Assembly: GCA_002104905.1 (NCBI GenBank) | Contig: MCFE01000086.1 | Location: 1 to 64,000, forward strand | Reading direction: 5' to 3' | Length of the DNA: 64,000 nt | DNA from: Basidiobolus meristosporus CBS 931.73 | Taxonomy: Eukaryota > Fungi > Basidiobolomycota | Shown: positions 9,869 to 35,022 of the stretch, piece by piece | Position numbering within the stretch: position 1 is the stretch's first letter | How the letters are laid out: each line of letters begins with the position of its first letter | Position numbers and translations under genes: made by a program | The notes under the pieces: model-generated | Seen by the model: the letters and a program-made list of their open reading frames with translations, nothing else | Databases searched by the model: none | What the model was told of the DNA's origin: nothing

Positions 9869-12800
9869 GCTAAATGTTCATACTGACTAGTCCTAATTTC
9901 AACCTAAGATATTCAAACTTGTCTCTAGCTAATGGTTTGGTAAATATGTCTGCAATCATTTCATCTGTAGGACAGTAAACTAAGCTAACTAAGTTATTCT
10001 CTATAGCTTCACGTATGAAATGATGTCAAATATCTATGTGCTTGGTTCTAGCATGAAAAGTTGGATTTCTACCTAATTGTATACATCCTTGATTATCTTG
10101 AAATAAAGTAATAGGCGTTTTTTGACATAGGCCTAAATCTGTAAAGAGCTTTCTTAACCACATTGCTTCTTTTGTAGCTTCACAGGCTGCCATATACTCT
10201 GCCTCTGTAGTAGAAAGTGCTACGGTTGGTTGCTTTCTTGAATTCCATGAAATGGCTCCTTTACAGTAAAGAAAGGTGTATCCTGTGGTGGATCTTCTGT
10301 CTTCTAAATTTCGTCCCCAATCAGCACCAGAGTATCCCACAAGATCCTGTTCTGAATCCTTATAAGTGTATCTTAAGCAGATATTAGCAGTTCCTTTTAG
10401 GTATCTTAAAATTCACTTAACTGCTGCAATATGATCAGATCCATAATTCTGATTATGTTGGCTGACAACTCCCACTAAATATGAGATATCTGGACGTGTT
10501 CCAAGCATGATATACATCTGACTGTTGACCATAGATTGATAAGGAAAGTCAGGGCTTTCAGATGGCACCAAGCTCTCTTGATTTGGTTGAGTTTTGACCA
10601 AGTTAAGGTTTGTCTCCATTGGGGTAGCTGCCGGTTTACAGTCTTCCATTTTGTACTTCTTTAGTATATCTTGAATATACTTGGATTGACTCAGGGTAAT
10701 AGTCTGGGTACTTCTGTCTATGGAGAACTTAATCCCTAAGTAGTAACTAAGTTCTCCTAGATCGGACATCTTGAACTCCTTAGATAGGCTGGATTTAGTC
10801 TCTTCCAGTGTTTCTAGGTTATTGGCAGCTATAATAAGATCATCCACATATAGAGCTAATAGAACTGGATTTGCTCTATCTGGCTTATTGTATATACTAT
10901 AGTCAGCATTACTCCTTTTGAAACTCAAAGATTCCAAATAAGAATCTATCTTGCAATTCCAGGCTCTCGGTGATTGTTTGAGACCATATAGTGACTTTTT
11001 AAGCTTGCAGACCAAATGGGGGTTATCTTGGTCAACAAACCCATCAGGCTGGTCCATATACATGTCCTCATCAAGTTCTCCATTCAAAAATGCAGTTTTT
11101 ACATCCATTTGATAAATAGAAAACTTATATTTGGCTGCAATAGCCAATATTAATCTGATGGAATTAAACTTGGCTACCGGTGCAAAGGTCTCAGCATGGT
11201 CAAGTCCTTTTGTTTGAGAGTATCCTTTGGCTACAAGTCTTGCTTTGTATCTTTCAATTGTACCATCAGCCTTGTATTTTGTCTTGAAGACCCATCTGCA
11301 TCCAATTGATTTTCGGTTGATTGGTAATTTGACTAAGTCCCAAGTTTGATTTTCCATCAGTGCCTGATATTCCTCAGTCATTGCAGATCTCCAAAACTTT
11401 GTCTGAGGGCTATTTAGGGCCTCTTTTACAGTCTGGGGTTCATCAACATGGACTGAATAGGCATAGGCTAAGTTTGTACCCTCATTGATATAGTAATTTG
11501 GGCTATTTCTTGTCCGATTGGATCTCCGGGCATTTGATACTGGAATGATCACTTCTGGGATATTCCTGGGCACTGATTCTGGCTGAACCACAGTTTTAGA
11601 GTCCTCTGGAGTGAAAAAATTTTCATTGTTTTGCTCTGATTCAATCCTGACAATTGGTGGACTTGAGATCAAATTTACGTCATCATCTGATGTCATTTTT
11701 TGTGAAAATTTTGAATTTTCATCAAACAACACATCCCTGGACTTGATCAGCTTCTTTGCTTTGGTATTGTAGAGTCTGTATGCCTTACTCTCATTGCAGT
11801 AGCCCAAAAATATGCATTTTACACTTTTTGGCTCAAATTTTGACTGATTTCCGGCCAGTTTTCTGGCATATGCTGTACACCCAAATATTCTTAGATGTTC
11901 TGCACTTGGTCTGTATCCATACCATGCTTCAAATGGAGTAGAATCACAAAGTATTCTGTTATAACTCCTATTTTTAAGATATACAGCAGTGGCAACTGAT
12001 TCCGCCCAAAAATCATAGGATAATTTTTGATCATGGATCATAGATCTTGCCATATCAATTATTGATCTGTTAGCTCGTTCTGCTACGCCATTTTGCTGTG
12101 GGGAGTATGGTACAGTAGTCTCTTGCTTTATCCCATGAATTTTGCAGAAGTGGATGAAGAGTTTTGAGGTATATTCTCCACCATTGTCAGAGCATATTAT
12201 CTTGATTTTTTCACCAGTGTCTCTCTCAACCATGGCTTTAAACTCCCTGAACTTAGACAGAGCTTCTTCCTTTTTCTCCATCAAGTAGACCCATGTGTAT
12301 CTTGTATAATCATCAATAAAAGTGATCAAATACTTCATCCCACCTAAGGATAAATTTTGCATAGGTCCACACAGATCTGAGTGAATTAGATCTAATTTTT
12401 TTCTTAGTTTTGATTAACCCAGAGCTCTTGAACGGTTGTCTGGCTTGTTTCCCATATATGCAGGCTTCACAGTGCTCCAAAATAGCTGGGGGATCAATTT
12501 TCACTCCAGAAATTAGCTGATCTTTGATCATTTTACGCAAATAATCAAAATTGATGTGTCCAAATCTCCTGTGCCAAAGCATTGGTGTTTCTTCATTTAA
12601 GTTACTTATATTGGCTTCCAGATATGATGGAATATAAGTCAACTTGTATAGGTTCTGATCTCTGATGCCCAAAGCAATATGAGCACCATTTTGATTAGTG
12701 ATCCTGCATCCAGAATTGTCAAAACTGAAACTGAGTCCTTCTGCCATGGCCTTGCTTACAGAGAGTAGGTTCTTGGCTATTTCTGGTACATAGAGTACTT

Positions 12801-13842
12801 CTTTAAAGGTCAGTGTATGGCTTCCTTCACTGCTTCTAAGGTTTACTTGGATAGTTCCTTCTCCCACTGCATCAAGTGTTCTATTGTCACCCATGAAAAC
12901 CTTCTTAATTGGAATTTCTTGATATTGGGTAAAAAGTTCTTTTTGGCGTGTAAAGTGTTGAGAAGCTCCAGAGTCAATATACCACGTCTGAGAATCCTTG
13001 TTTGTGGTCATATTTAGTGCAGATATGAATAGTCTATCTTCAGTTGTTGCAGCATTTCCATATTCAGGCTTCTTTTGCTGATAATCTCTCTTTTTGAAAC
13101 ACCGGTCTGATGTGTGTCCTTTCCTTTTGCAGTGGTTGCAAAATAGATTGCTGTTGCCTTTGTAGGGTCTTGGGTACCTCCTTTGTTGGTTATCATTGCT
13201 TATTAAAGCATTTTCTTCTTCCTTCTTATTGGCGCTTGAGTTTCTTAATTCTTCATCCAGGAGCCTTCCATATACATAATTTAACGTCAAATCTTCAGTT
13301 CTGGACTCTAGGGCTGATACAAGGCCCTGAAACTTGTCTGTCAGGCTATTCAGGATGGTAACTATCACATCCTCATCAGTAGTTGGTATGCCCACAGATT
13401 CCATCTCATCTACCAGCAGGGTAATTCTGTTAATTAGATTTTTCATTTCTTCTCCTGGCAGCATCTTTGTAGTAAAGAGTTTTCTTCTCAGATACATTTT
13501 CTTGGCAGCTGAACATGACTGGTAGGTGTCTTCTAATGCCTTCCAGGCATTCTTTGCCGTTTTTGCTCTTGAGCATTGATTTAGCAATTTGTCCTTGACA
13601 TTAAGGCAAATGCAGTTAAAGGCACTTTGTTCTTTCTTCTGGTACTTTAAGGCTTCCTCTCCCACGTTTTTAGGAGGGCATTCTTCTCCCATGACAATAT
13701 CCCAAAGGCCTCTTTCTTGCAGCAGCATCTTCATCTTCACCTTCCACACTTGGTAGTTAGATCCATCCAACTTTTCAGCAGAGGGAAAAATTCCAATAAT
13801 AGCAGTAGTAGACATTGCAGAGAGTGACAGCTCGGGGCTCAT
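9869..13842 (-). pseudogene. Copia gag-pol of element 2, with one frameshift (about 12400) and one nonsense codon (about 10413)
   Basis: gag LDGSNYQVWKVKM, zinc knuckle CNHCKRKGHTSDRC, protease WYIDSGAS, integrase HRRFGH...CEAC and SDNGGEY...[26 protein letters not shown], RNase H EAEYMAACEA/RTKHIDI. Confidence 0.93.
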
Positions 13843-13846
13843 AACC
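13829..13846 (-). promoter_or_regulatory. Primer-binding site GGTTATGAGCCCCGAGCT, complementary to the anticodon arm of initiator tRNA-Met (half-tRNA priming type)
   Basis: Lies directly 3' of the 5' LTR. Its complement GGGCTCATAACC matches the fungal iMet anticodon loop region. A decayed copy, ggctatgagcccc, is at 43930. Confidence 0.8.
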
Positions 13847-16800
13847 TGCTGTAAGAGTCTTGGAGATATTGGAAGTGATTTGGAGAACAAGTAGATTATG
13901 TGGTTTTCACTTAATGATTTATTGAATGTAAAAGTAGTGTTTATACTTTTACATGGTCTTGGCATTACAAACACGTAGAATAGGTTAAGGAAGGTCCCAA
14001 GAACATGTGTGCAAAGTTTGGGGCTGTTTGGACCACTTTGAGAATTTTCATGTTCTGGGTACCTGGTATTTTGGTGAAAATATTCCAAGTAAATCCCGAC
14101 AAGGAATTTGGTCAGTATTCTCTAGGATTTGAAGGTGATGATCTAAGTGACTAAGTTAGGTGAATATTTAGGTGGAAAATACAAATTTTTACAACAGGTT
14201 ACAGAGAGTAGGTTCTTGGCTATTTCTGGTACATAGAGTACTTCTTTAAAGGTCAATGTATGGCTTCCTTCACTGCTTCTTAGGTTTACTTGGATAGTTC
14301 CTTCTCCCACTGCATCAAGTGTTCTATTGTCACCCATGAAAACCTTCTTAATTGGAATTTCTTGATATTGGGTAAAAAGTTCTTTTTGGCGTGTAAAGTG
14401 TTGAGAAGCTCCAGAGTCAATATACCACGTCTGAGAATCCTTGTTTGTGGTCATATTTAGTGCAGATATGAATAGTCTATCTTCAGTTGTTGCAGCATTT
14501 CCATATTCAGGCTTCTTTTGCTGATTATCTTTCTTTTTGAGACACTGGTCTGATGTGTGTCCTTTCCTTTTGCAGTAGTTTCAAAACAGGTTGCTGTTGC
14601 CTTTGTAGGGTCTTGTGTACCTCCTTTGTTGGTTATCATTGCTTATTAAAGCATTTTCTTCTTCCTTCTTATTGGCGCTTGATTTTCTTAATTCTTCATC
14701 CAGGAGCCTTCCATATACATAATTTAACGTCAAATCTTCAGTTCTGGACTCTGGGGCTGATACAAGGCCTTGAAACTTGTCTGTCAGGCTATTCAGGATG
14801 GTAACTATTACATCCTCATCAGTAGTTGGTACACCCACAGATTCCATCTCATTTACCAGCAGGGTATTTCTGTTAATTAGATTTTTCATTTCTTCTCCTG
14901 GCAGCATCTTTGTAGTAAAGAATTTTTGTCTCAGATACATTTTCTTGGCAGCTGAGCATGACTGGTAGGTGTCTTCCAATGCTTTCCAGGCATTCTTTGC
15001 TGTTTTTGCTCTTGAGCATTGAATTAGCAATTTGTCCTTGACATTAAGGCAAATGCAGTTAAAGGCACTTTGTTCTTTCTTCTGGTACTTTAAGGCTTCC
15101 TCTCCCACATTTTTAGGAGGGCATTCTTCTCCCATGACAATATCCCAAAGGCCTCTTTCTTGTAGCAGCATAGAATAAGTTAAGGAAGGTCCCAAGAACA
15201 TGTGTGCAAGGTTTGGGGCTATTTGGACAACTTATCTAATTTTCATGTTCTGGGTAAATATTCTAAGTAAATCCTGACAAGGAATTTGGTCAGTATTCTC
15301 TAGGATTTAAGGGTAATGATCTAAGTGACTAAGTTAGGTGAATATTTAGGTGGAATTACGAATTTTTACAACAACTACTTCCACAAATGTTTACAATTAA
15401 AAAGTTGAAGGAAAAACACCAGCTGAATGCCAGCAAGATACCATTAGAGTACAAGCAGAATACTGTCAGAGTATCAGATGAATTCCAAGTGTGAGATTTT
15501 TCATAAGGATATTAGGGTATCTGGTTTAGCACCTAGATAGCTCATATACAATGACCAGTTTGTGAATTTGCTGGAATTCTGTAGGTTTCCAAAAATCCCA
15601 AGCTTGTCCAGAAAATCCCACACTCTGCTGGCAACATTCAGGGAGCATACTCAAAGCACTCCTACCGTTACATTCATGACGTTTCACAATAAGTGTGAAT
15701 CCTGTGCTTCAACCGTTTACACCACTGACCAGTGCAATACCCACTTTCTTGTGATCCCAGATCACTTCCAAAGCTCCCAGAGCTCTTCCGGCAACTGAGG
15801 GAGGTTGGTGTGCACCAAGACCTGAGTCGTGGAAAACCTTATGTGTTGCAACACCAGGGTCAGCTTGTCAAGTCCCACCAAAAGAATGAATCCCAACCTT
15901 TCAACCATGTTCCCAAGTGACACTGTTGAGCAAATCCCGTATTTGAGATCCAGAAGATCTGGGTAGCACCAGCCAGTCCCCATCATGGCCCAGGTATTCT
16001 GGATCCAATTCCCAGGCCGTGGTTGAAGTTCGCCAATGGGCATAACAGGAGCACTGCGTAGGAATCCTTGGAATGGTACCCATCTTTCTGGCGGCGTGAT
16101 CTAGGAGATCCGATCGGGTGCGGCGGGATCGGGGGACTTCGCATGGGGTTGAGTGCCCTTGGATACAATGGATATTGATCTGGCGAGATGCTACCGCTTG
16201 CCTCCTGCAATTCGTTTGTACCATGTCGTACAGAGGGGACGAACGCTCCATTTGGCACGGATTGGCTTCGATGGTTGTCAACCATGTACACGCCCAAAGT
16301 ATTGTGTTTGTTGGGTAAGGATTTTCGACTATGTTGCCAAAAAACCTTATTTGTTGGACTCCACTGTAGCTTGTTCCTCCAGATCATGAACATATGCGCA
16401 GCTCCATGGACACCGTGTCGGGTAATGGTGCTTTGCCCTATGGATCCCCACCGGGTGTAGAAACCCACACCCTCCCGCCATCCTCCAAACCTTCCCGATG
16501 CTAAGACAGATAGCGCATCGATCGGGTGGACAAGACAGTTTTTGGCAAGTATGCTGGAGCAATGGGCATCGATTGCAGCTCAGGGTTATTCAGCAACGAA
16601 TGCATTCTGTGATCCAGCGCCGGCCAATTCCGTGCTCACCGATGACTGCTATTTCGTCATAAGACCAAAGTGTTCCTTAATTCGGGCTGATGTACCTATT
16701 AGGCAAAATTAGTGTGCATCTACGTGAGATTCGTACATGCCCGTATCTCCCTAGGTGTCACCAATCATATTGGTGTCCCATCTCCAAGTGTCAATCCTTA

Positions 16801-19442: not shown

Positions 19443-20804
19443 ATGGCCTGGGGAAATCCTGGACCGAGTCCAGCAGACGAGTGGGTCAAGAAGTTGGAAA
19501 CAAACGATCCCGCCTTCAGATCGCTACACATCCTTAGCTTCCGTCGAATCAGCCAGCCCGACTTTCAACGTATCTTCGCGGCCCTTGGGAAAAACACCGT
19601 CTTGTCCGAGCTCTACTTATCCGGACATAGATTGGAGAGCGATACCCTGAAAGTGCTATCCGATGCCTTAGCCACTAACAAGGCTCTTCAGCGGCTTAAT
19701 GTGGGCCACAATGAGTTCGGCTCCGACGAAAACGCCTCCAACTTCCAAGTGCTCTGTGAGGGACTGAAACGCTGTGAAGGGCTTAGAAACCTTGATCTTG
19801 AAAACAAGGGCATTGGTGCAAAGTGCGCTCAAATACTGGGCCATACCCTAGCAGTTAACAAGAGCCTAGTCGAGCTGAATTTATCTAGAAACCAGATTAA
19901 CGATGTGGCTATGGAGGCCTTGTGTGAATCGCTTGGTGACGATGTAATGAGCCTCGAGAAGTTGGATTTATCGGCCAACGAGATCTCATACAAGGGGGCT
20001 GCCTCTTTGGCCAAACTCCTGGTCGACGAGAGAGTGAGACTTACGGAGCTGGTGCTCTCCGAAAATCCACTTGGTGCCAAGGGAGGAGCTGAAATTGCGA
20101 AAGTTTTGGGCCAAAACCAACGTCTGAGCGTGTTGAAGATTGCCTTTATTGACCAAGAGTCGGCCGACTTTCAGGTTGTTGGAGATTCTCCTGGTGACGC
20201 TGTTCTCTCCACTCTTGCTGAATCGCTTGATGCGTCTTCCAACTTTGGAGTCCGCAGCCTCTGGATGGATGGGTGCAGAATCAGTCATGAAGGCGCCATC
20301 AACCTTGCGAAAATTATCAAACACACTAGGCTAGAGGAGATCCGTCTACGCAGCAACCAGGTTGGAGATGAGGGTGTCCGCTATATCAGTCAAGCCATTT
20401 CAGAGCCAAACTCCACCATCCGCAAGCTTGAGCTAGGAGAGAACGGGATCACGACCATCGGCTTTGAGGCGTTGTTGAGCGCCAATGCCCTGGAATACCT
20501 TGGCCTTTTCAACAACAAAGTTGACTTTGCTAATGGGGTGCCTAGTACCGAAATCACCGTGCCACTGGCAAATCTGCTTACACTAGATCTCGGATGTAAC
20601 AATATCTCCACCGAGAGCTTCACTCTCGCCTGCCAAACCCTCATCAGCGGATTTGCCCCCTCCTTAAGAACCCTTGAGATGGGTGGAAACCTGGTTGACG
20701 GCAATGAGAATGTTTGGGAGGAATGGACCGAGAAGGTCAAACAAACCAGAGAGATGCTGAATATCATGTGGAAGCAGAATCTTCAAAACCAAAATCAGCC
20801 ATAA
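19443..20804 (+). CDS. RNI-like leucine-rich-repeat protein, single exon, 453 aa
   Basis: Repeated LxxLxLxxNxIgxxG units (LRNLDLENKGIG, LVELNLSRNQIN, LEKLDLSANEIS, LEEIRLRSNQVG). Confidence 0.88.
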   Translation: MAWGNPGPSPADEWVKKLETNDPAFRSLHILSFRRISQPDFQRIFAALGKNTVLSELYLSGHRLESDTLKVLSDALATNKALQRLNVGHNEFGSDENASNFQVLCEGLKRCEGLRNLDLENKGIGAKCAQILGHTLAVNKSLVELNLSRNQINDVAMEALCESLGDDVMSLEKLDLSANEISYKGAASLAKLLVDERVRLTELVLSENPLGAKGGAEIAKVLGQNQRLSVLKIAFIDQESADFQVVGDSPGDAVLSTLAESLDASSNFGVRSLWMDGCRISHEGAINLAKIIKHTRLEEIRLRSNQVGDEGVRYISQAISEPNSTIRKLELGENGITTIGFEALLSANALEYLGLFNNKVDFANGVPSTEITVPLANLLTLDLGCNNISTESFTLACQTLISGFAPSLRTLEMGGNLVDGNENVWEEWTEKVKQTREMLNIMWKQNLQNQNQP

Positions 20805-21532: not shown

Positions 21533-22465
21533 ATGCACAGTAGCAACCAATCACAGCCAACCATTGTAATCGACACGCCTGAGGTCCAGCCTAGCAATGT
21601 GCAGAGCGAACATTTAGGAATCAAGGCTTACCTGCATGGGGAGTACTTTCCAGCGTGGGGAAGACTTCGCTCCACTTACCGCTGCTATTTGGCAGAGTTC
21701 TTTAGTACAGCCATACTGGTATTTCTTGGTCTCTCTGTGGTGACCCAAGTCCATGTAAACATGAAGGGTGCGGCTGGGTCCTGGTTGAGCATCAACATCG
21801 GGTTTGGGTTCGGCTTCAGCATCGCGATCTATGCCAATGCTGGAATCTCCGGCGCGCATCTTAACCCCGCACTTACCATAGCGCTGTGCCTACTCAAAGG
21901 ATTTCCCCTTCGTAAAGTGCCAGGGTATATCATCTCTCAGGTATTAGGTGCGTTCTGCGGTGCCGCGTTAGTCTATAGTGTGTTCTATCCAGCGATTGAT
22001 AATTTCGATGGAGGTACCAGGAGGGTGGTTGGTGATCTAGGCTCGGCCGGCTTTTTCGCAACCTATCCGCTGGCGTTCCTGGGCAATGGAAATGCGCTAT
22101 ATACCGAGATATTATCCACTGCGGTACTCGTGATGGCAATTTTTGCCGTGGAGGATATGAAGCGCCATAATCTGGTGGAGTTTGCACCTATTTTCCTTGG
22201 GCTTACGCTGATGGTAATCGGGATTAGTACCGGGTACCTGACTGGCTATGCGCTCAACCCTGCCCGCGACTTCGGCCCCCGGCTGTTCTTGCTGATTGCT
22301 GGCTGGGGCAAGGAAAGCTTCACCGCTTATAATTATTACTTCTGGGTGCCTATAGTCGGACCTATTCTGGGCGGTGTCTTGGGTGGAGCTATCTACACTT
22401 TTTTCATTCACTGTGGCCCACATCACAGAGATACCAAGAAAATGGCCCTCTCAGTTAGCTACTAA
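21533..22465 (+). CDS. Aquaglyceroporin (MIP family, GlpF-like), single exon, 310 aa
   Basis: Two NPA boxes, GISGAHLNPALT and GYALNPARDFGPRL (the D after the second NPAR is typical of glycerol facilitators). Six hydrophobic segments. Confidence 0.95.
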   Translation: MHSSNQSQPTIVIDTPEVQPSNVQSEHLGIKAYLHGEYFPAWGRLRSTYRCYLAEFFSTAILVFLGLSVVTQVHVNMKGAAGSWLSINIGFGFGFSIAIYANAGISGAHLNPALTIALCLLKGFPLRKVPGYIISQVLGAFCGAALVYSVFYPAIDNFDGGTRRVVGDLGSAGFFATYPLAFLGNGNALYTEILSTAVLVMAIFAVEDMKRHNLVEFAPIFLGLTLMVIGISTGYLTGYALNPARDFGPRLFLLIAGWGKESFTAYNYYFWVPIVGPILGGVLGGAIYTFFIHCGPHHRDTKKMALSVSY

Positions 22466-24010: not shown

Positions 24011-27000
24011 CTAATAGTGTTTAGACTTGATGGCTGGTGCGTTAGAGGCCTGGTCAATACGAGCAGTCAGATTCAATATCATTTCCTCTAGGTTGGCGAT
24101 CCGTTGATCGTCATGCTTTTCTCTCTGTCGAAGGCACAGGGCACGATTTACCGGGAAAAAGCTGTAGTCGCTATCCTTGAGCATCTCTGCCACGTAGGAC
24201 TCCTGGGAGGTATATTCTGTGACGTCTTTAGTCTTCAGATGAACCAGGAAGAACAAATATTGCCATATGTTGTGGTCGTGCTTGATATGATGCTCGAATC
24301 CCTTGGCGTGTCTTTGAAATTCAGTAGCGCTGATGTTGCATATGAAGCAAACGCTCTTCATATCGTTCTGAATGGAGGATCTTTCATCTCTTAAACTACC
24401 AAATGTGTCGAAAATGATACCGAAGATCGCATTCAAAAGGAAGACGATCACAATAAGGAAGAACGAGAGATCCAGCACAATCCTATACGCGTACGAGTTG
24501 TCTCCGTGAACCGGTGCTTGGAGCACATCCCCAAGGCCACCGCCCGCTCGTATTCTAAGAGAAGATGGATCGCAAGGTCACTGACTGCTCAGCACAGAAA
24601 TACATTCGTGAATCAAGTAGTTACCCATATGCAAGTACGGTGATGAAGCAGTCGAATAGTGTGTCACAATAATACCCCTGTTCACTATCAAACGAATGAC
24701 GAAAGTAAACAAATCCCACCACTGAATATGCGTACACGATAATGACTCCAAGCAAAACCTAGCACACTACGATTAGAGAATGCCGTTTGCAGACCAGACC
24801 ATTGTAGGTCGGCTGTAGGTGAGGTGTTTGGAAGGAAGTTTGCTTTACCGTTTTCGTAAGTGAGTTGATGTTAACGGTTACGCTGGCGATAACCCCTTGG
24901 AGAATCTGGTCTCTGTAGATGAAATCAAGCAAATGGATAGAGTAGAGCATGGGGTATCGAAGACCGCATAGAGAAAGAATAACCATGAATACATGGTAAA
25001 GCGCCTTTAACTCCGTCACAGAGTATATGATCTTTTCGGCAATGTTCTGTGGAAGAAAGATAAGCATCATGCGGCATCAAAATCTTCACAGATTCTCACC
25101 CACCGATGGCGAGAGTGTCTCACTCTCCGACATAAGGACATTGAAGTAGCCAGCTGTACTATTGCGGTTGGGATCTAAGACCTCTTCGTCATTCATAAAA
25201 CTAGCTTCATGGGAGTGTAACTGTGCATCTTCTTTGGCCTTTTGTTTACGCAATTGGTTGGACTTCTCCAACCTTTTTCTATTGATGAGAATTGGTAGTT
25301 GAATCAGTAAGAACTCTCCACAAGACAATGTCCATAGAACCAGATGGGTTAATGCAAAAATGATCCGTAACGTCTCAGCTGACCAATGACACCCATCTTC
25401 CAACAAAAGCTCGGCGTTTCTGGTTCTGCCAGTAGCACGATCTTCGGGAGCGGTTGCGCAAATCAATCCTAATGCATTAATCAGAAGTGTCATCAGATAG
25501 GCCCCTTGCCACCACAGAGAATGGTACCCAGACAACTTTGAGAGGTAGTGGTTACGGGCAACTCTGGCCTGGCTCTCGATCTCATATATGATGTCTTCGG
25601 ATTTAGTAACAAAATCCTCGATCTTTGTATCTGCAGAGTCTCTCTTGACGTTCCATAAGAAATGCTCTTTGGTATCTTCTCGCAAGTATCTACAGATATC
25701 TGGGATTGGGAAGAGAACTGACGCCACCCTTTTATCACCTGGTGACAATTCGCGGATGATTTCGATTTGCCCAGTGTTTCGCTTGAAAAAGGTGAACGCA
25801 GGCTCACTTTGGAATCGATATTGTTGCTCTTTGGTTAAAGCTGGGAACAACGTCATGATTAGCATACAATACAGGAACCCAGAATCAATCGCAGACTGTT
25901 TTCCAGGCTTCCAAGTGGTACTTTTGCTTTGTTCAAACAAGTTGCGTAAGTTGCGGTTGACGGTATCCAAGTCGAGAGTGTTGGCCATCTCTCTGTAAAT
26001 GGATTTCGCTTCAATGTTGCCTCCCTCTAGCAAGCTTAGAAGACAGAGAATCGCCTTTCCCTTTAACTCGACGGCCTGCTCCGCTGGACATTGATGGAAC
26101 GGTTCGCGAAGTATTATATTGACAGACTGGACGATTTTGGCATTAAATATGCTCACTTGGTTGGGGATACATCCTTGGACCATTTCAATGATAGTGTCGA
26201 ACACCTGGGTGATCACTGGCATGGTTTGGGAGATCAGATTCTCGTCTTGAAGGATAGTGATGGGCACAATCGCATGCAGGTAATCCACCACCCCGGTGAC
26301 CAGGTTAAAACTTTTGATGTTATCTCCCTGAACACTGAAGTAGGTCTGGAGACTGTAATTGTGTCCCTCTACCATCAGCTGCAGTAGTCTCATGAGATGA
26401 CATATGGCCTCGAAGTCTTGAGCAGTGGTGCCAAGATCCGATTTGTCTTCTGGCTGAAGATATTTGGTGATCTTGTCTTCATCTTTTGCGTGCTCAAGGT
26501 TGAGGGTTATGATGGGAATATCGTCTGAATGGGAGAGTATTTGGTTCAAGAAATTCGACGTGCTAACCGAGAGTCCACTTTGGTGGCCTCGAAGTCGACG
26601 CCGAATCTTCGATGAGAGAGTTGAGGTTCGCTCCTTTTTTTTAGCATCCACGACAAGCAATTCCTTGGCCTTACGAAGGGAAAGGATTCCTTCTCTCAAC
26701 TTGTGATGGACGCAGTAAAAGAACCGCTCTACTCTGATATCAAGAAAATATAGTTAGCGAGGCCTTGCGTATCGACCGTACAATCCGTTTTTACCTTGAA
26801 CCGAGGAAATAATTCTCAAGTGTGTCCTACAGGAAGCGAGTGAATATGGTTTGCTATTGAATTAAGGCTTTTCCATCGTTACCTGCACTTTCTTATTGCC
26901 ACCGTCAAGTAGAGCATTCAGCAGCTTCATTGCACTGATGTAAATTTGCTGGCTATTGGAGGACAGGAGCTTTTCTGCCATCAGGGTGCAGCCAAGCCTG

Positions 27001-30000
27001 TTCAACTTGTTTTGGATGTCAACCTTTCGTTGCTGTAGACGAGCCCATTCTGAGGGATAGTCCAGATGCTTGATTCTTTCAATCTCGTCGGTGACGTTGG
27101 TGACCAGGTTTCTCAGAATCCTCATGGTGCGAATATCGTACAATTCCTTCCTGATATCCTCTACATCGTTCAGTCTTCCAGAGAGATATTCTACTAGGGA
27201 AACAATGGTGTACTCCCCGAGAGTTTGCGATTCCTCCAATGGAAAGTGAAGACTAAGCTGGCAGAATTCCTCTTTTTCCAGCTCTTCGATCCCGCTCGAT
27301 GTGATGATTCTGTTCAGAAATTCTTGGAAATTCTTGTTCAGCTTGCCCAATGAAGTGCCATCAAGGCTACTTCGTGGTGATTGAGAAACTTTCAGGGATG
27401 TGTAAAGCGCTTTCGTTGGGCTGTTCTTCAGATGTCCATGGAGGCTTGGTTCAACAACAAGGGTATCCAAACAATTAATCAAATGTTTTAGATGTTTTGA
27501 CGATCTTGGTGGAAACTCTGCCAACGATGTCACTTCATCTACAATGCGATTGCCCAATTCTCGTCGACCTTCGGCAATGTCGTATTGTGCGATAGGACTC
27601 TTTTGCGACGAGAAGTAAATATCAAACAGCAATCTCAAAAAGATGAGTACCGACTCATACACATATGCTGACTTGTTCTTGAAGTCTTCGACATCTTTTT
27701 GAGCACTGGGATTCCGAATATCACCATTAAACGATGCCAACAGATTGCATATCTTCTCCACGTAAACCCAGATCAGCGGGTTTTCCAGGATATATCCAGT
27801 ACTTGTTCTGGTCCATAAATATACAGCAATGAAAAATCGTAGGTAAGATCTCTCCACCATGAAGTTAAATTCCGGACTAGCCAAAACATCCAAGATTTGA
27901 GTGGCAGGTAGGATAGACTGGAATATGGACTGTAGACTATTTTCTCCTTCAGCACAAGTAGCCATTAACTCAATCAACGCTGCTTGGTAAAAGACGGGAG
28001 GTGGCTTGGAGATGCTATCATCCTGATTTCCTTCAAGGGTGATGTATTCGTCTTTCTTTTCAAGTAAAAGATCAGCGATATAGAGCTGGTTCCTTTTGAT
28101 GATTTTTCCAGAGACTTTGACCAACCCTCTGAGTAAACATAAGTATTCTCCGTGATATCCTTCCGAAAGCTCAAGTATGCGTCGCATATGATGCTCTTCC
28201 ACTCTCAAACACAAGTTGACGCTCTTCGAAAAAATGTCAATCAATGGGGCGGTCATTCGCTTATCATACGATACAAGTTCGAATAGAAGGTCAATGTTCT
28301 GTAGCAGAATGGTGCTATGTATCTCACGATCGTCACAGCTGCAGACCGAAAGAAAGGCGAGAGAAGCCAAAAACAAACCAAGGATGTCCTCGTTCAACCA
28401 CTCGACCTGTCGCTCGCCGTAGGTACATTTGTATAAATAATCTATCACGTATGTATGCATCTCCATATTGAACAGGATTCTTTGCACCATGGTGTTACTT
28501 TCTTGACAGGAAAGCTGCCTTTTCACCAGGTTGTCTTTGAAATCCACTACTGATTGGCCTCTACACAGATCCGTAAAATCGGTCAAGATTTCTTTCATTT
28601 TCCTAATACCGGTGCGCTCATGGGAGTGTTGCAAGGAAAGGGTAAGGAACATGGTTACCCTAGGCCTGATCCAGTAGTAAACTTGGATGTCGTAACTTTC
28701 TGTTAATATAAACGATCTTCGTGATTTCTCGAACAACTCTTCGTAGTCGCAATAAAGCCTGTGCATCACTACAATGGAGCCTTGCTTCAACCGCTGGTTT
28801 TGATATTTAATGAGATCCACCAGAATGGGCATAATATCCGTCTCCCGATTGATGTAGCGGGTCTCCATAAATATCCTCTTGATGATTATCTCAATAGCAG
28901 ACTCCCAGGTATTGTTGTGGCCAAAATTTTTGGAATCCAGCGTGTTCAGGCGTTGTTGATCCCTAGATGGAAACGGCAGTTAAGTCTCTTTTCTGGTCAC
29001 AAGAAATATGGTGAGGCGAACCTTTCATTTTTCAACCAGATATACAGGAACTTTCGAACTCGAATCTCTGTCCTTAGATTGAAAAGCAGCTCCAGGATAG
29101 AGCATATCTCGATTTTGATGTCAATGATCATCTTGTTCTTCTCCTTGTAATGAAACCGCTCGTCACTACACGGGATCTCATCGTTAAATCCCATCGATTG
29201 CGAGTCTAGCAGCTAATTCACAAATACCAGACTAACCTAGTGGTGGATTTCCCCGCGGCCCTTTTTGACTCCTCGATCAGTCCGTGTTCACTAGAAACAG
29301 AGTACGTGTGAGTGCTAATACAAGATGTGCTGAATAGAATGGCTTTGCTCAGTACTCGGAATCTGTACGGCCGTCCAAAAGAGTAGTCAGAGTGCGGATC
29401 ATAGATACGATTGCCGCATGCTCATGATAGAAGCCGAAAATTACAAGCGCGTGGATAAGTTTGAGGACCGAATATATCAGCGTATTGAGCTTCTCGTCCC
29501 GAGTCACCTAACGCAACAATGTGAGCTTCACTAGACCCGGAAAGCTGAGGGTTTGCAACTACCTTGGAATGAAGCACAAAAAACGATCGAAGCCACTGGG
29601 TCAGCTTCTTGATGCTATGGATATTTGCCAACGTTCCCTCCACTGAATAGTTCGACGAGTTGGTAATCTCAGACTCAATAAAAATGAGATCTTCAGAGAT
29701 TGGCGACATAGGATAAACGTCGACGTAGAGCACTAAATTACATGTTAGTTCAGAGCGAAATAGGCTTTGTAAAAACCGTCAAGCTGATACCTCGAATTAA
29801 ATCGCAGTATTGTGTTCTTATCTCGATGGGTAACTTCTCGTTAAACAAGCAGATGAGACATCTCTCTAGAGAAACCTTCAAGTACACCTCTGTTACTAGA
29901 CCCATGGAGTTTTCGTTTCTCCCCAGGCAAACTGCATTGGTAAACTTCAGCATGGCTTCGAAATACTGGGCTTGCAGAGGATTTCGTGCAAAATACTCAT

Positions 30001-32310
30001 GCATTTCGACGGAGCAATCGTCAGCATCGTTCATAATGAACACCTTGTCATTGCGATCTTCGACCTTGGCAATATGGAGTCTACTTAATATCTGGGAGGC
30101 GATGTAGTCCTGGTGCTGGCGAATTGGTGTGTTGTTGCACGAACAAAGAGTAATCAGGATATCCAGAATCATAGGCTTTTTCTCGGTGAGCACCATATTT
30201 ATGAAGAAATCAATTTGCTCTGGCGTGATCCTTTCGATTAACTCGCGATTTCCATGCAGCAGATGAATGATAACCTGGGCGACTTCGATATTATACTCGA
30301 TGTGCTTACACAACGTTGGGAGATAATCAAATACGTAGCGCTGATTCACCAAATGATCCCCTAGAAGAAACTGCGATATCAATCGGTAGGCAAGAAACAG
30401 CATTTCACTAAGCATAGGATCCTGATTCAACTTGGCCAAATCCACTTCAGCCTCCCCCTCAATTTCCTGAGTGTTCGTTCGAAGGCGGTCCCGAAGTTCC
30501 TTTCGGATCTTTAGTGAGAACGGGACCCGCAGCAGTAGTAAGATCTTAGACATAATGCCGCTTTCCCTGAGGATGTTCTGGTGAGCTATTACAGGATAAT
30601 TAGTCCGAAGTATTATGCTGCATTGGGTTGAATTCGATTTACCAACGATAGGTAAGCCAACTCGCTTGTTCGGATCCATCTCACCGGATTTAGAAGAGAA
30701 GTAAATCAGAGAAGTCTATGAAAGAAATACGTTACTACATTGTGCAGATGAGATACGCGATGCTCACTGAAATACCAATATCTTTTTGATCTTCTCATCC
30801 TCGTCCGCGTCAATGGGGAATGCTTTACGAGCTGTGGCGACTCGATATTTGACGAGAAAATGGTCGATATGAGGCGCCATGCTGTTAACAAAATTGAACG
30901 TTTCCCCAAGTGTACTGCCAACTCGAGTGATTGTGAAGCAATCATCGAAGCTTGTTTGGTTGGTCGCCATAACAGTAAAACCATCCATGGAGTCAGCGTG
31001 AATCAAGAGCGAGGACTGGCGTTGAAGTTGGTTGGCTGCCTTGCTGGAGTCCGGCGTTTCGATACCATGTAAATGGAGCCAAGTCTGGGTTTTCACATGT
31101 TTAAACTTGGTGTAGGATCCAGTAATGATGTTTGTATCATCGGACTCTAACGATTGTAACTCAAACAACGTATTGTCATCGCCAGGGTTTTGAGGCCCCA
31201 AAATGATCTTGTATAGGGTTTTCCCGGAAAGGTCATCGTGCGTTTTGGAATCAAGATCCACCTGCAGGTACAGTCGCGAGATTGGGCATTTGATTCGGCA
31301 CCGAGCTCCTCCTTTCAGCAAGCTACCATTGAAGGCCGTCTCCAGTGTGATTTGCCAAAATGTAAGAGAAGAGTCACTTTCTTGAGGATTCAACGGGTGG
31401 AAGATGTGAGGCCTAACGGTGACGTGATTAGTTCCGAGAAGATTCTGCAGATAACCTTCCTTCTCCTTGTGATAGAGTCGAACGAAATGGCCTCCTTTGA
31501 GTCGCCTGCTATTGAGCGTTTGGATTGGGCTAAAGCAGTGAACCTTCCAGCCAAACGAATTTAGCGAGTTGTATACCTCATGAAGTCTCGTTTTGAAAAC
31601 GTCGTGCGTGAACATGGACAATCCAGCCTTCAGATATCCCTCGGTTTTGATCGACTGCAGTATCACTACATGGGCTCTAAAATTAATTGCCGTATCAACT
31701 ATGAACATGAAGAACTGGCTTGTTCACCTGAATCGCCCAGCCGGACAGGTTCTCCTTCGCCGCGGATTCTGTGCTTAGGTAGAATGCGGAAAAAGTTCTT
31801 TCTGCTGGTCATATTCGATAAATCGACGATGAGCGTGGTCCCTTTGTTCGTGGTTGTCTGGTTGGTGTTGACTCGCAGGTACTTGTTGTGGTGTATGTTT
31901 CGGAGCTGAATAACCTGGCCATAGAGTAGAACTTTCCCATTGAGGCGCTGGCATTCAGCCTTGTTGTATTCGTTCTCGGATAAGGCGGCTTTTCTTAGCT
32001 TTTCCAACTGCTGGTTAGTTTCGTCGAGAGTCTCTTCTGAAGTCAGTACTTCACCAGGGGCTTCGTAGATCAGAGGGTTCTTAAGAGCGGTGAATATCTT
32101 TCGGAGGGTTTTATTTGCCTCATAGTTGCACTGGGGCTCCACCTTAAATACATATGCGTTGACATCTTGAGCACACTCATTTTGGCTAGCGTCATCTCTG
32201 AGGTAAGCGCGAGGCTGTATTGGTCCTTCGGCAAACAGCAAGCCGCCTATCTCTGAAGATAGCAAAATGTCATCCCCTATTCTAAGGAACTCTTCCACTT
32301 CCCTCTTCAT
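24011..32310 (-). CDS. ITPR: Inositol 1,4,5-trisphosphate receptor-family Ca2+ release channel, multi-exon, roughly 2,500 aa
   Basis: N-terminal suppressor-like MKREVEEFLRIGDD...LLYGQVIQLRNIHHNKYL; MIR-like region; RIH region (HQNILRE, NQRY); RIH-associated LLQLMVEGHN...SFNLV; pore CDTLFDCFITVLAYG|IRAGGGLGDVL; LNAIFGIIFDTFGSLR; C2H2 site CFIC...HIKHDHNIW; TEYTSQESYV. Internal exon boundaries were only partly resolved. Confidence 0.93.
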
Positions 32311-34251
32311 ACTGCTAACTAACAATATGAAAGTAATTCTCAACCACCATGAAGGCAAGCAATCTACTTTTTAAGCATTGAGACAGCTAAATGCTTCCAA
32401 ATTCAGAAACCCAGGTTGATTGCGGCCAATGAGGAGGGCTTGATTCATCCACCATTATACCCTATTATTTCCTTATTCTGACCTCAACTACCACAAAACA
32501 TGCATCTCATCCATTGAGCACCTGGCCAAGATGCCCTTGAGTACATTACCCTGGATATCCTTTCCAGCACGACGCTCAGCACCAGGGTTGGCCAGTGCTC
32601 ATGGGCTTGAGCACCCTGGCAAGCAAGCCCAACCTCTAAACACGCACTTTGACCCAGCCTCTCTCACAGAACAATACTTGAGCACATCGAAGAACCGTCT
32701 GATTGGTGACGTTACCACCAACACCCCTAAACGAGATCGCTTTGTCTCAAAATGGATGGGTATAGCATGATCCTTTCATGCTCTAGATATTTATCATTCA
32801 ACAGTACTGCTACACGAACAGGTTGTATGTGGATACTGACAGTCATTGGCCTCCGCTGATCGAGTTTCCATGCACCTGCATCATGTTGATTGCAGCCATG
32901 ACAATCAATAATTCCCATGCAGTTTACATATAAAGAAATGGAGGGCTTACGCAAGATATTCTATATTTAACTAGGCAATTCAGAGCGATATTTGTTTCCA
33001 AGTGGGCTAGAGATTGGGACAAACAAATGGCGCCTCGCTTCCTGAGTGCCCTCGCACAATTAGCCAGCACATATTCCAATTCTGGGACAAATTCGGCCTG
33101 ACAGTCACTTGGTGTCTATTCTCTGGCTGTGCACATGTAACCCCAGGTAGGTGGATATCGCTCACCGCTTATAGGACGATCCTTCAACTTGCATTCCAGA
33201 GTAAGATGGATGTATCTACGCCACCGTCAGATTGGGTTTTCCTCTCAGATCGCAAGTGGTGTAGCATAACCAATTGGACAGCATTAAGACACCGAGGGTT
33301 TTATGGCCATCCGTGTACCAATCTTGCTCATGGGCCCGTTTCTAGTTTAGATCATAGATATATGCTGGCTACTAATACCCCTCACTTTGGTTAGACCATT
33401 TGGAAGCCATGTTAATGATCTGGGGAGTTCCACAGGGAGACATGATGAATGACTTCGAGTACCTCTGTAGGTGAGGGGCCCAGGCTACAATCAATAGTGT
33501 GTGCTCACACCTGCCACTCAACCCTCCTCAGGCGCTCGTGTGCTACCCCATCCCACTTCTCATGCTATTTTTCCAGCAGAATGCTCGGGCAAGGGCCACT
33601 CAAACCAAGGATTGAATGCTGTGGTTAATGTGATGATGGGATGTCTATAAAGATATGGCACCCCACCGTTGTCGAATCTCTTGTGCCGTACTCAATGTAA
33701 ATCCTCTTTTCCACTTAATACTGGGGTTAAATAATGCTTGGTTTCTCAGATCCAATTCCGCCAGTAGTGCGCTATGACTATCTATGGCTACCTGGTCCAA
33801 CAGTGAAGATTGGTCGAGAAGTGCTGCGGAGCGCGAGTAAGATTGCAGGGACCATTCAGCACAGCGGAATGCCCTGCTTTCTGCCATATCTGCAAATAGG
33901 TCTTCACTAATATGGACGTCTGGCAAAATGGCAGACGGTAATTGGCTATCTCCTTGTATATTTAGACCCAGCACAGAATCGACGGAAAAATCCCGCGTCC
34001 ATTTACAAATGAAACACCACCCATCCATACTTGCAATTGGCAAGTATGCGGGGAACAAGAAACAAGCAACTGGAGTCCAAGGCGGAACCAATCACAGGCC
34101 TTGATTGCCAGCAACTGTAATTTATCCATTAGGATACTTGACCGATTCTACGTGGCACCAGATTTTTTTCCGCTCTGCCATCAATAAATTGACCGAAAAT
34201 TTCTCTTCGTTGTGTTTAGGCTTCTTCCAAAGATACCATCGACTCTATAGG

Positions 34252-35022
34252 ATGTCTTTCAGAAACGTACTTGTTCGCTCTCTACGCCCCGTAGTTTGCT
34301 CGCGTATTGCAGCTACCCGTGTTGCTCCCACTTTGTTGCGTGGCATCTCTCCCGTCGCCACTCGTGGCTTTTCTGTTACCAGCCAACGTTTCGGCAATGG
34401 TGTGGTTGACAAGGACCTTGCCCACTCTCTTCAAACCGAGATCTCCTACGAGGCCGAGAACGAGGAGACCGAGGCCCCTGAATTCTTGAAGGAATTCCAA
34501 GACAAGAACACCTTCCAAATTGAAGAAACCTCCGGACAAGCCGAGGTCACTTTGACCAGAAAATTCGGTAACGAGACCATCCAGGCCGTCTTCTCCATCA
34601 CCGATATCAACAACGCTGAAGAGGACATGATGGACGAGGAAGAGGAAGGCGAGGAGCCCGCCGAGCTTCCTTTCCCTGTTCGCTGCAATATCTCCATCAC
34701 TAAGGGGGATGACAACGGCTGCTTCACCATCGACGCCATCGCTGAAGATGGCGCCTTTGGTATCGAGAGTGTGATCTTCTACAAGGATGCCAAGCTCGCC
34801 AGAGACCGTACCAGTGAGGCTGACTGGAACCGTCGCGGCTACTATGTTGGTCCCAACTTCAACAACCTTGACGAGGGTGTCAAGGAGAACATCCAGAAAT
34901 ACCTTGAGGAGCGCGGCTTCGATGAATACTTGGCCAACTTCATCCCTGACTACATCGAGTATAAGGAACAAAAGGAATACCTTAACTGGTTAAAGGATGT
35001 CAAGACCTTCGTCGAAAAATAA
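34252..35022 (+). CDS. MAM33: Mitochondrial acidic matrix protein (MAM33/p32/C1QBP family), 256 aa
   Basis: Presequence MSFRNVLVRSLRP, highly acidic body, and C-terminal GPNFNNLDEGVKENIQKYLEERGFDEYLANFIPDYIEYKEQKEYLNWL. Strong C-ending codon bias. Confidence 0.93.
   Translation: MSFRNVLVRSLRPVVCSRIAATRVAPTLLRGISPVATRGFSVTSQRFGNGVVDKDLAHSLQTEISYEAENEETEAPEFLKEFQDKNTFQIEETSGQAEVTLTRKFGNETIQAVFSITDINNAEEDMMDEEEEGEEPAELPFPVRCNISITKGDDNGCFTIDAIAEDGAFGIESVIFYKDAKLARDRTSEADWNRRGYYVGPNFNNLDEGVKENIQKYLEERGFDEYLANFIPDYIEYKEQKEYLNWLKDVKTFVEK

Follow-up and report, generated by a model that had tools for sequence, protein, structure and literature searches.

The window analysed here, 64,000 nucleotides (nt) of Basidiobolus meristosporus CBS 931.73 (contig MCFE01000086.1, positions 1 to 64,000), harbours on the minus strand at 24011-32310 one intact gene for a protein resembling inositol 1,4,5-trisphosphate (IP3) receptors (IP3R). 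The gene comprises 14 exons and encodes 2,492 amino acids (aa): (i) translation starts at the ATG at 32310 and ends at the TAG at 24013-24011 (-), (ii) the coding sequence of 7,479 nt contains no stop codons within the frame, and (iii) the 13 introns are all bounded by GT..AG and measure 55-90 nt. Judging by sequence comparison, the product would be an intracellular channel that has lost nearly all residues for binding IP3 and has kept those for Ca2+ activation and ion permeation.

Gene model and domain order

The complete gene model, the construction of which had been suggested in an earlier note on this stretch, was assembled manually on the basis of GT..AG sites and an unbroken frame and then corrected against two Basidiobolus relatives. 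Homology searches were performed with single exons or public proteins, and the spliced protein was joined for alignments and trees. The model consists of the following parts (E-values of Pfam and Protein Data Bank (PDB) matches in brackets):

31728..32310 (-), exon 1 (aa 1-194): suppressor / beta-trefoil 1 (Pfam Ins145_P3_rec, E 2.4e-16; PDB IP3R1 residues 4-180, E 1e-11)
30776..31665 (-), exon 2 (aa 195-491): beta-trefoil 2 (MIR), one half of what was the IP3-binding core (Pfam MIR, E 1.4e-11; PDB 3t8s, E 2e-7)
30643..30715 (-), exon 3 (aa 492-515): from the gene model
30586..30642 (-), in-frame intron of 57 nt: encodes 'PVI' of the earlier note in the raw translation
29791..30585 (-), exon 4 (aa 516-780): first armadillo region (ARM1) / RIH, with AHQNILRE and DHLVNQRY (30358-30335) (Pfam RIH, E 1.2e-21; PDB IP3R1 residues 486-658, E 4e-13)
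29563..29732 (-), exon 5 (aa 781-837): from the gene model
29356..29507 (-), exon 6 (aa 838-887): from the gene model
29237..29290 (-), exon 7 (aa 888-905): from the gene model
29022..29165 (-), exon 8 (aa 906-953): from the gene model
26883..28962 (-), exon 9 (aa 954-1647): central armadillo (ARM2) region, no Pfam match of its own
26795..26826 (-), exon 10 (aa 1648-1657): micro-exon of 32 nt, from the gene model
25104..26733 (-), exon 11 (aa 1658-2201): ARM3 / RIH_assoc, Ca2+-sensor residues and first transmembrane segments (Pfam RIH_assoc, E 3e-22; PDB IP3R2, E 4e-17)
24849..25046 (-), exon 12 (aa 2202-2267): transmembrane region, by hydropathy
24625..24758 (-), exon 13 (aa 2268-2311): S5 and pore-helix region, by hydropathy
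24011..24554 (-), exon 14 (aa 2312-2492): filter, S6, C2H2 zinc finger and ATP half-site, TEYT, C-terminal helix and stop (Pfam Ion_trans; PDB IP3R2 residues 2494-2665, E 1.7e-43, with residue alignment)

The Pfam domains follow each other in the order Ins145_P3_rec, MIR, RIH, RIH_assoc and Ion_trans, i.e., that of IP3R, all of them above the gathering scores, while a scan of all exons yielded no SPRY, RyR-repeat or EF-hand match. The best PDB matches of every large exon are IP3R1, 2 or 3 (phmmer, E 2e-7 to 1.7e-43), with ryanodine receptors (RyR) matching more weakly. Hydropathy analysis revealed five to six hydrophobic segments at aa 2068-2366. Domain order and PDB matches bear out the assignment of this gene to the IP3R family in the earlier note, and the identity of the locus described next bears out its fungal origin.

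The window gene corresponds to K493DRAFT_348021 of B. meristosporus CBS 931.73 (protein P0158; public name 'MIR domain-containing protein'). Its residues are identical to those of the present model wherever both call exon; with 2,278 aa versus 2,492, P0158 is 214 residues short, part of the transmembrane domain being among those missing. Its start lies 71 residues late, and three stretches measuring 88, 24 and 38 residues are spliced out, including one that belongs to the transmembrane domain. The late start and the four extra 'introns' of P0158 were rejected, since the skipped residues are conserved in the two relatives (P0001 and P0157, see below); this includes two stretches of exon 9 that are spliced out in the public model. 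As the missing pieces are well conserved, the public model is under-predicted, and the annotation of this locus needs correction.

A first model of 13 exons and 2,511 aa was replaced after comparison with the relatives had exposed an in-frame intron. The respective 57 nt at 30642-30586 (-) are stop-free and in frame (GTAAAT...ATAG), with a length and splice signals typical for this gene. Since the 19 codons are absent from the paralogue P0001, the B. ranarum orthologue P0157 and also the public model P0158, the stretch is an intron. A stop-free in-frame intron reads as coding in the raw translation, and others could mislead likewise; comparison with the two relatives revealed no second one in this gene. 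Apparent introns of 29 nt (first) and 31 nt (sixth) were also rejected, as introns of 62 and 71 nt restore the frame and the alignment with IP3R1.

Both relatives were found by a HMMER library search with exon 11 and by a word-based search. The paralogue P0001 (K493DRAFT_341790, 2,495 aa) is encoded on another contig of the B. meristosporus genome and shares 79 % identity with the window protein, and the B. ranarum protein P0157 (K7432_003395, 2,502 aa) shares 82 %. The window protein is colinear with both from end to end, and all three have the N-terminus MKREVEEFLRIGD in common. P0157, the sole B. ranarum protein found, groups with the P0001 copy rather than with the window gene. Among the Basidiobolus proteins, identity amounts to 80-87 % in the N-terminal domains, which are as conserved as the rest of the protein, and to 91-93 % in the ARM3/RIH_assoc region. 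A word-based search with the N-terminus of P0001 retrieved 4 proteins only, a number reflecting the limited sensitivity of this search and not the rarity of such proteins.

The former IP3 pocket and the channel sites

Eleven IP3 contacts (rat IP3R1 numbering: R265, T266, T267, G268, R269, R504, K508, R511, Y567, R568 and K569) were compared with the window protein, and the sites for Ca2+, Zn and ATP were checked against the residue lists for human IP3R3 (hIP3R3) of PMC8930994. The relevant elements, in addition to the ARM1 motifs of exon 4, are:

31382..31417 (-), loop VRPHIFHPLNPQ (aa 278-289): takes the place of LRTTGR (R265-R269) of IP3R1
26384-26358 (-), LQLMVEGHN (E1780, H1782): Ca2+-sensor residues
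26195-26172 (-), TIIEMVQG (E1841, Q1844): Ca2+-sensor residues
24544-24527 (-), GGGLGD (aa 2316-2321): selectivity filter, kept
24401-24433 (-), S6 segment (aa 2353-2363): consensus NxIFGIIFDTF in the fungal clade
24349-24263 (-), CFIC...HHIKHDHNIW: C2H2 zinc finger with ATP half-site
24220-24194 (-), TEYTSQESY: Ca2+-site segment

The motifs reported in the earlier note were recovered at their positions (VRPHIF at 31417-31400, DHLVNQRY at 30358-30335, AHQNILRE ending at 30563 and GGGLGD at 24544-24527). For the first ARM1 helix, that note had read PVIAHQNILRE and had concluded that R504 and K508 are replaced and R511 is kept. The residue changes hold, K508 being Asn; 'PVI', however, like the 16 residues preceding it, stems from the intron, and the mature protein reads PIVAHQNILRE with Val in place of R504. 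Thus, in the intron-corrected HMMER alignment V515 corresponds to R504, H517 to R506, N519 to K508 and R522 to R511. For the second ARM1 helix, HMMER reproduced the proposed pairing of DHLVNQRY with DYRKNQEY, with H593, L594 and V595 in place of Y567, R568 and K569. The beta-trefoil 2 loop is aligned in two ways: HMMER pairs HIFHPLNPQ with HVFLRTTGR (P285 for R265, Q289 for R269), whereas the family alignment by MAFFT pairs R279, the Arg of VRP, with R265. The claimed retention of R265 is therefore supported by MAFFT only, while T266, T267, G268 and R269 are replaced under either alignment, in agreement with the claimed loss of T266, T267 and R269. Outside Basidiobolus and Apophysomyces, which has Lys at this position, R279 is not conserved, chytrids having non-basic residues. 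Hence, whether R265 counts as kept or lost is alignment-dependent, and only R511 is certainly kept.

At most two of the 11 IP3 contacts remain in the window protein, and its three pocket segments have a net charge of 0. By these alignments, the electropositive IP3 pocket is gone from the window protein, and the earlier claim that the IP3-binding site has been lost is upheld, nearly all contacts being replaced with both HMMER and MAFFT.

The Ca2+-activation site of hIP3R3 is formed by E1882, H1884, E1946, Q1949 and the main chain of T2581 (PMC8930994). The window protein has kept E1780, H1782, E1841 and Q1844 as well as the TEYT segment (2424-2427). Likewise present are the zinc-finger ligands C2381, C2384, H2401 and H2406 and, on the zinc-finger side of the ATP site, the contacts C, F, I, K, H, N and W, with one change from Met to Ile. 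Residue conservation thus indicates that the Ca2+-activation site on the cytosolic side, the zinc finger together with the ATP half-site, the filter and S6 are all intact, and the retention of Ca2+ residues, Zn/ATP site (on its zinc-finger side) and filter noted earlier agrees with the published lists. The table of motifs compiled for the Ca2+ site, the zinc finger and the filter covers the window protein, the fungal clade described below and the canonical receptors (IP3R-A).

Modelling of the binding core, likewise suggested beforehand, was carried out with AlphaFold2 for P0158:155-585 (model residues 219-649). The window core was predicted with a pLDDT of 82.4 and a pTM of 0.81 and matches IP3R cores best (VIA Z up to 32.8; root mean square deviation 3.1-3.5 A over ~360 residues), followed by the N-terminal domains of RyR. 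According to this model, the IP3R fold of the binding core is retained. Similarity is much higher to the IP3-bound, pre-active and active states of hIP3R3 (VIA Z 30.5-32.8) than to the apo state (Z 19-22), which could be taken for a clam that is constitutively closed and mimics the IP3-bound form. This possibility was rejected, since a canonical IP3R-A control modelled at the same alignment depth (Sarcoptes core, P0182:245-655) displays the same preference (Z 41-42 versus 24-26). The preference thus reflects a bias of AlphaFold towards the holo state and provides no evidence on the clam. In the models me5c47b683804 and m6369413ea19e, the pocket-less fungal and the canonical IP3R-A cores are both closed and resemble the IP3-bound form.

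Fungal relatives and neighbouring features

The ~16 closest full-length matches of the window protein are all from early-diverging fungi, including Apophysomyces and Entomophthora muscae for Mucorales and Entomophthoromycotina as well as the chytrids Quaeritorhiza, Blyttiomyces, Polyrhizophydium, Chytriomyces, Clydaea, Lobulomyces, Polychytrium (two copies), Phlyctochytrium, Podochytrium, Dinochytrium and Physocladia. P0153 from Polyrhizophydium stewartii (4,446 aa, annotated as 'protein kinase domain-containing'), a chytrid member of the clade described next, could be an artefact of fused gene models or a genuine fusion of kinase and channel.

Phylogenetic analysis of ~700 C-terminal columns (FastTree, IQ-TREE LG+C20 PMSF and IQ-TREE LG+G4; all trees unrooted) consistently assembles the fungal sequences in one clade (Basidiobolus, Entomophthora, Apophysomyces and more than 12 chytrids) with a support of 99-100. 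A long-branched pair of chytrid paralogues (P0037 of Quaeritorhiza and P0084 of Clydaea), which is also devoid of the IP3-contact residues, joins the main fungal clade with a support of 97-99. The next clade is formed by Capsaspora CAOG_04510, Salpingoeca rosetta PTSG_02461, a Corallochytrium protein and mollusc proteins; we take it to be IP3R-B, with P0035 presumably being CO.IP3R-B. This assignment is based on the Capsaspora member differing from the IP3R-A accession in PMC9522344 and on the clade having no vertebrate member in the present sample. IP3R-A (from Corallochytrium, Caenorhabditis, Trichuris and Sarcoptes) falls with the non-opisthokont homologues, and the split of fungal clade plus IP3R-B from IP3R-A plus non-opisthokonts receives SH-aLRT values of 94 and 99. 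The published 'IP3R-B/RyR' grouping is neither confirmed nor refuted with P0190 as the single, long-branched RyR. On the basis of these trees, the window gene belongs to a fungal clade that is adjacent to IP3R-B, yet forms a distinct branch.

The pocket was further compared in a binding-core alignment of 16 fungal, 10 IP3R-B and 4 IP3R-A sequences. In the fungal clade, the trefoil loop reads (F/L)(D/N)PLNPQ(D/E)xxS and the ARM1 helices are marked by HQxLLRE and NQx(H/Y), patterns that are kept across Zoopagomycota, Mucoromycota and Chytridiomycota; the motif FDPLNPQD also occurs in three further chytrids. The acidic residue following the PLNPQ stretch and Arg522, the equivalent of R511, are invariant. 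For the three pocket segments, net charges range from +4 to +7 (IP3R-A) and from +4 to +11 (IP3R-B) versus -6 to +2 in the 16 fungal sequences (mean -2.4), with holozoan IP3R-B keeping most of the basic pocket residues (HLRVR, RQKLLR, SRKNE). Moreover, when the 9-mers of the N-terminal 800 residues were ranked by their conservation over 13 fungal lineages, the replaced loop fell into the top 5 %. Since the loop and, in Basidiobolus, the N-terminal domains are thus conserved, the fungal pocket is, from its sequence pattern, to be regarded as remodelled under constraint and not as decayed or privately lost.

The strongly basic pocket of holozoan IP3R-B, with P0035, P0042, P0045, P0113, P0106 and P0086 as members, suggests, given that the Capsaspora member reportedly does not bind IP3, that these proteins may bind another polyanion.

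Beside the channel gene, the following features were observed in the window (open reading frame, ORF), of which the peptide synthetase, the copia element, the LRR protein, the aquaporin and MAM33 fit a fungal genome:

103-5292 (+): fragment of a nonribosomal peptide synthetase, an intron-free ORF with AMP-binding_C, Condensation, AMP-binding, PP-binding and Thioesterase, seemingly cut by the window start
7021-7929 (-): second RVT_2 fragment, near the copia element
10416-14088 (-): Ty1/copia long terminal repeat retrotransposon, with gag and pol in two ORFs overlapping at 12313-12362
19443-20801 (+): ORF for an LRR_6 protein
21533-22462 (+): ORF for a MIP aquaporin
34105-35019 (+): ORF for a MAM33 mitochondrial glycoprotein
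54148-54804 (-): fragment of a DDE_Tnp_4 (Harbinger-type) transposase

Proposed mode of action and alternative explanations

From conserved and replaced residues, the window gene probably encodes an IP3-insensitive, Ca2+-activated and ATP-modulated release channel of a conserved early-fungal clade, and an IP3-independent, Ca2+-gated channel, as envisaged in the earlier note, appears to be the most reasonable reading. The product would represent a subunit of a tetrameric Ca2+-release channel of IP3R-like size and domain order that resides in endomembranes. Such a channel is expected not to respond to IP3 and to open upon binding of Ca2+ at the ARM3/linker site, i.e., by Ca2+-induced Ca2+ release as in RyR, with ATP acting as potentiator. 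The N-terminal beta-trefoil/armadillo module may have been kept as an allosteric gating ring, again as in RyR, and not as a sensor of inositol phosphates. Accounting best for the sequence features is thus a channel that would work like a small RyR and has the architecture of an IP3R.

Several points weigh against this proposal. The position in S6 that we take to be equivalent to the gate residue I2590 of IP3R1 is occupied by Phe in the window protein and in the consensus of the fungal clade. The mapping of the ATP site covers its zinc-finger side, whereas the contacts K2152 and F2156 of hIP3R3 lie on the ARM3-side helix. Invariance of the R511 equivalent and the strong conservation of the new pocket form could mean that binding of a ligand persists. 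Furthermore, the trees are unrooted and the sole RyR included (P0190) forms a long unresolved branch. Finally, the Capsaspora IP3Rs have kept the Ca2+-site residues, yet do not display Ca2+ regulation of the mammalian type (PMC9522344), so that retained residues are no proof of gating by Ca2+.

The conservation of the pocket in its new form also allows for a different function. One may speculate, rather doubtfully, that the proteins of chytrids, Mucorales and Entomophthoromycotina (Basidiobolus included) represent a distinct subclass in which the pocket was rebuilt into a conserved, neutral or acidic (D/N)PLNPQ(D/E)/HQxLLRE/NQxH surface that either binds a messenger other than IP3 or, in place of IP3, latches beta-trefoil 2 to ARM1. 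If true, the rebuilt pocket would add a third way of controlling channels of this architecture to those realised in IP3R-A and RyR. Unlikely, but the strongest of the competing explanations, is that the remodelled pocket serves as receptor for another ligand (a non-polyanionic small molecule, a cation or a peptide/protein), with gating by Ca2+ jointly with this ligand instead of IP3. In its favour, no degeneration is seen in the three segments that once bound IP3; they are conserved in their new form across Zoopagomycota, Mucoromycota and Chytridiomycota, with the acidic residue after PLNPQ and Arg522 invariant. However, conservation of an inter-domain surface is equally expected if the clam merely transmits allosteric motion, as do the N-terminal domains of RyR, and nothing in the present data points to any ligand.

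It is quite improbable that IP3 or another inositol phosphate still binds and gates the channel by way of compensating basic residues elsewhere in the cleft. Candidates for such residues exist: R522 is kept, R279 may align with R265 in Basidiobolus, and a conserved Lys-Arg pair (PxKRxG) is located ~10 residues upstream of the ARM1 helix. They are opposed by the loss of K508, R504, R568, K569, Y567, T266, T267 and R269, by the net charge of the pocket segments, neutral to acidic throughout the clade, and by the more basic Capsaspora IP3R-B, which is said not to bind IP3. In favour of this explanation, IP3-evoked Ca2+ release has also been reported for fungi devoid of any IP3R (PMC3410928). That the gene is a remnant in decay or without function can scarcely be credited: Dikarya did lose the family entirely (PMC3410928, PMC9694693), but here an uninterrupted reading frame extends over 14 exons and 7.5 kb, the paralogue and the B. 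ranarum orthologue are 79 and 82 % identical (ARM3/RIH_assoc 91-93 %), and the checked Ca2+, Zn, ATP-side and pore residues are retained.

Compared with known systems, the proposed Ca2+-gated channel combines features of several groups. IP3R-B of Holozoa is the nearest named clade in the unrooted trees and has the same length class and, Capsaspora IP3R-B aside, the same order of Pfam domains, but differs by its basic pocket (+4 to +11, with HLRVR/RQKLLR/SRKNE) from the neutral or acidic fungal pocket with its PLNPQ loop. IP3R-B was reportedly defined by Alzayady et al. in 2015, who are said to have found that the Capsaspora protein does not bind IP3. IP3R-A (mammalian IP3R1-3 and ITR-1 of C. 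elegans) shares with the window protein domain order, core fold, C-terminal helix, Ca2+ site, C2H2 zinc finger, ATP half-site and the GGGxGD filter; K508 and most other contacts are, however, lost in the window protein, its pocket is neutral instead of charged (+4 to +7), and it is located across the 94-99 split. RyR belongs to the same superfamily and shares the zinc finger, an N-terminal trefoil/armadillo module that does not bind IP3, the Ca2+-induced Ca2+ release proposed here and EGHN in the Ca2+ site, where IP3R-A has ENHN. Yet RyR is much larger (~5,000 versus 2,492 aa), its SPRY, RyR-repeat and EF-hand domains were not matched in the window protein, and the sole RyR in the trees did not join the fungal clade, although its branch is long and unresolved. 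The IP3R homologues of oomycetes are likewise IP3R-like channels of filamentous microbes and show no conservation of the IP3-contact residues (PMC9694693); they are phylogenetically distant, and P0135 and P0132 from oomycetes differ in falling with the non-opisthokont group and in having no PLNPQ loop.

IP3-insensitive IP3R-like channels are accordingly already known from IP3R-B and oomycetes. The 'possibly undescribed signalling mode' of the earlier note is thus not sustained, as the clade adjoins IP3R-B and both the oomycete homologues (PMC9694693) and RyR provide precedents. A literature search on fungal IP3R retrieved general statements only, namely that homologues occur in early-branching fungi and not in Dikarya (PMC9694693, PMC3410928, PMC7016017). 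The conserved de-charged fungal motif, the two Basidiobolus copies and the corrected gene model were not found described and may be new.

For fungi, Ca2+ transients and IP3-evoked Ca2+ release have been reported, yet Dikarya possess neither IP3R nor RyR to account for them (PMC3410928). Within the fungi, store-release channels are accessible only in those early-diverging lineages that have retained the family, and the de-charged, conserved site argues against the channel being the missing fungal IP3 receptor. As a natural channel of IP3R size that is probably gated by Ca2+ only, it could help to dissect how the N-terminal ring is coupled to the pore, and it also bears on the gain or loss of IP3 dependence in the IP3R-B/RyR lineage.

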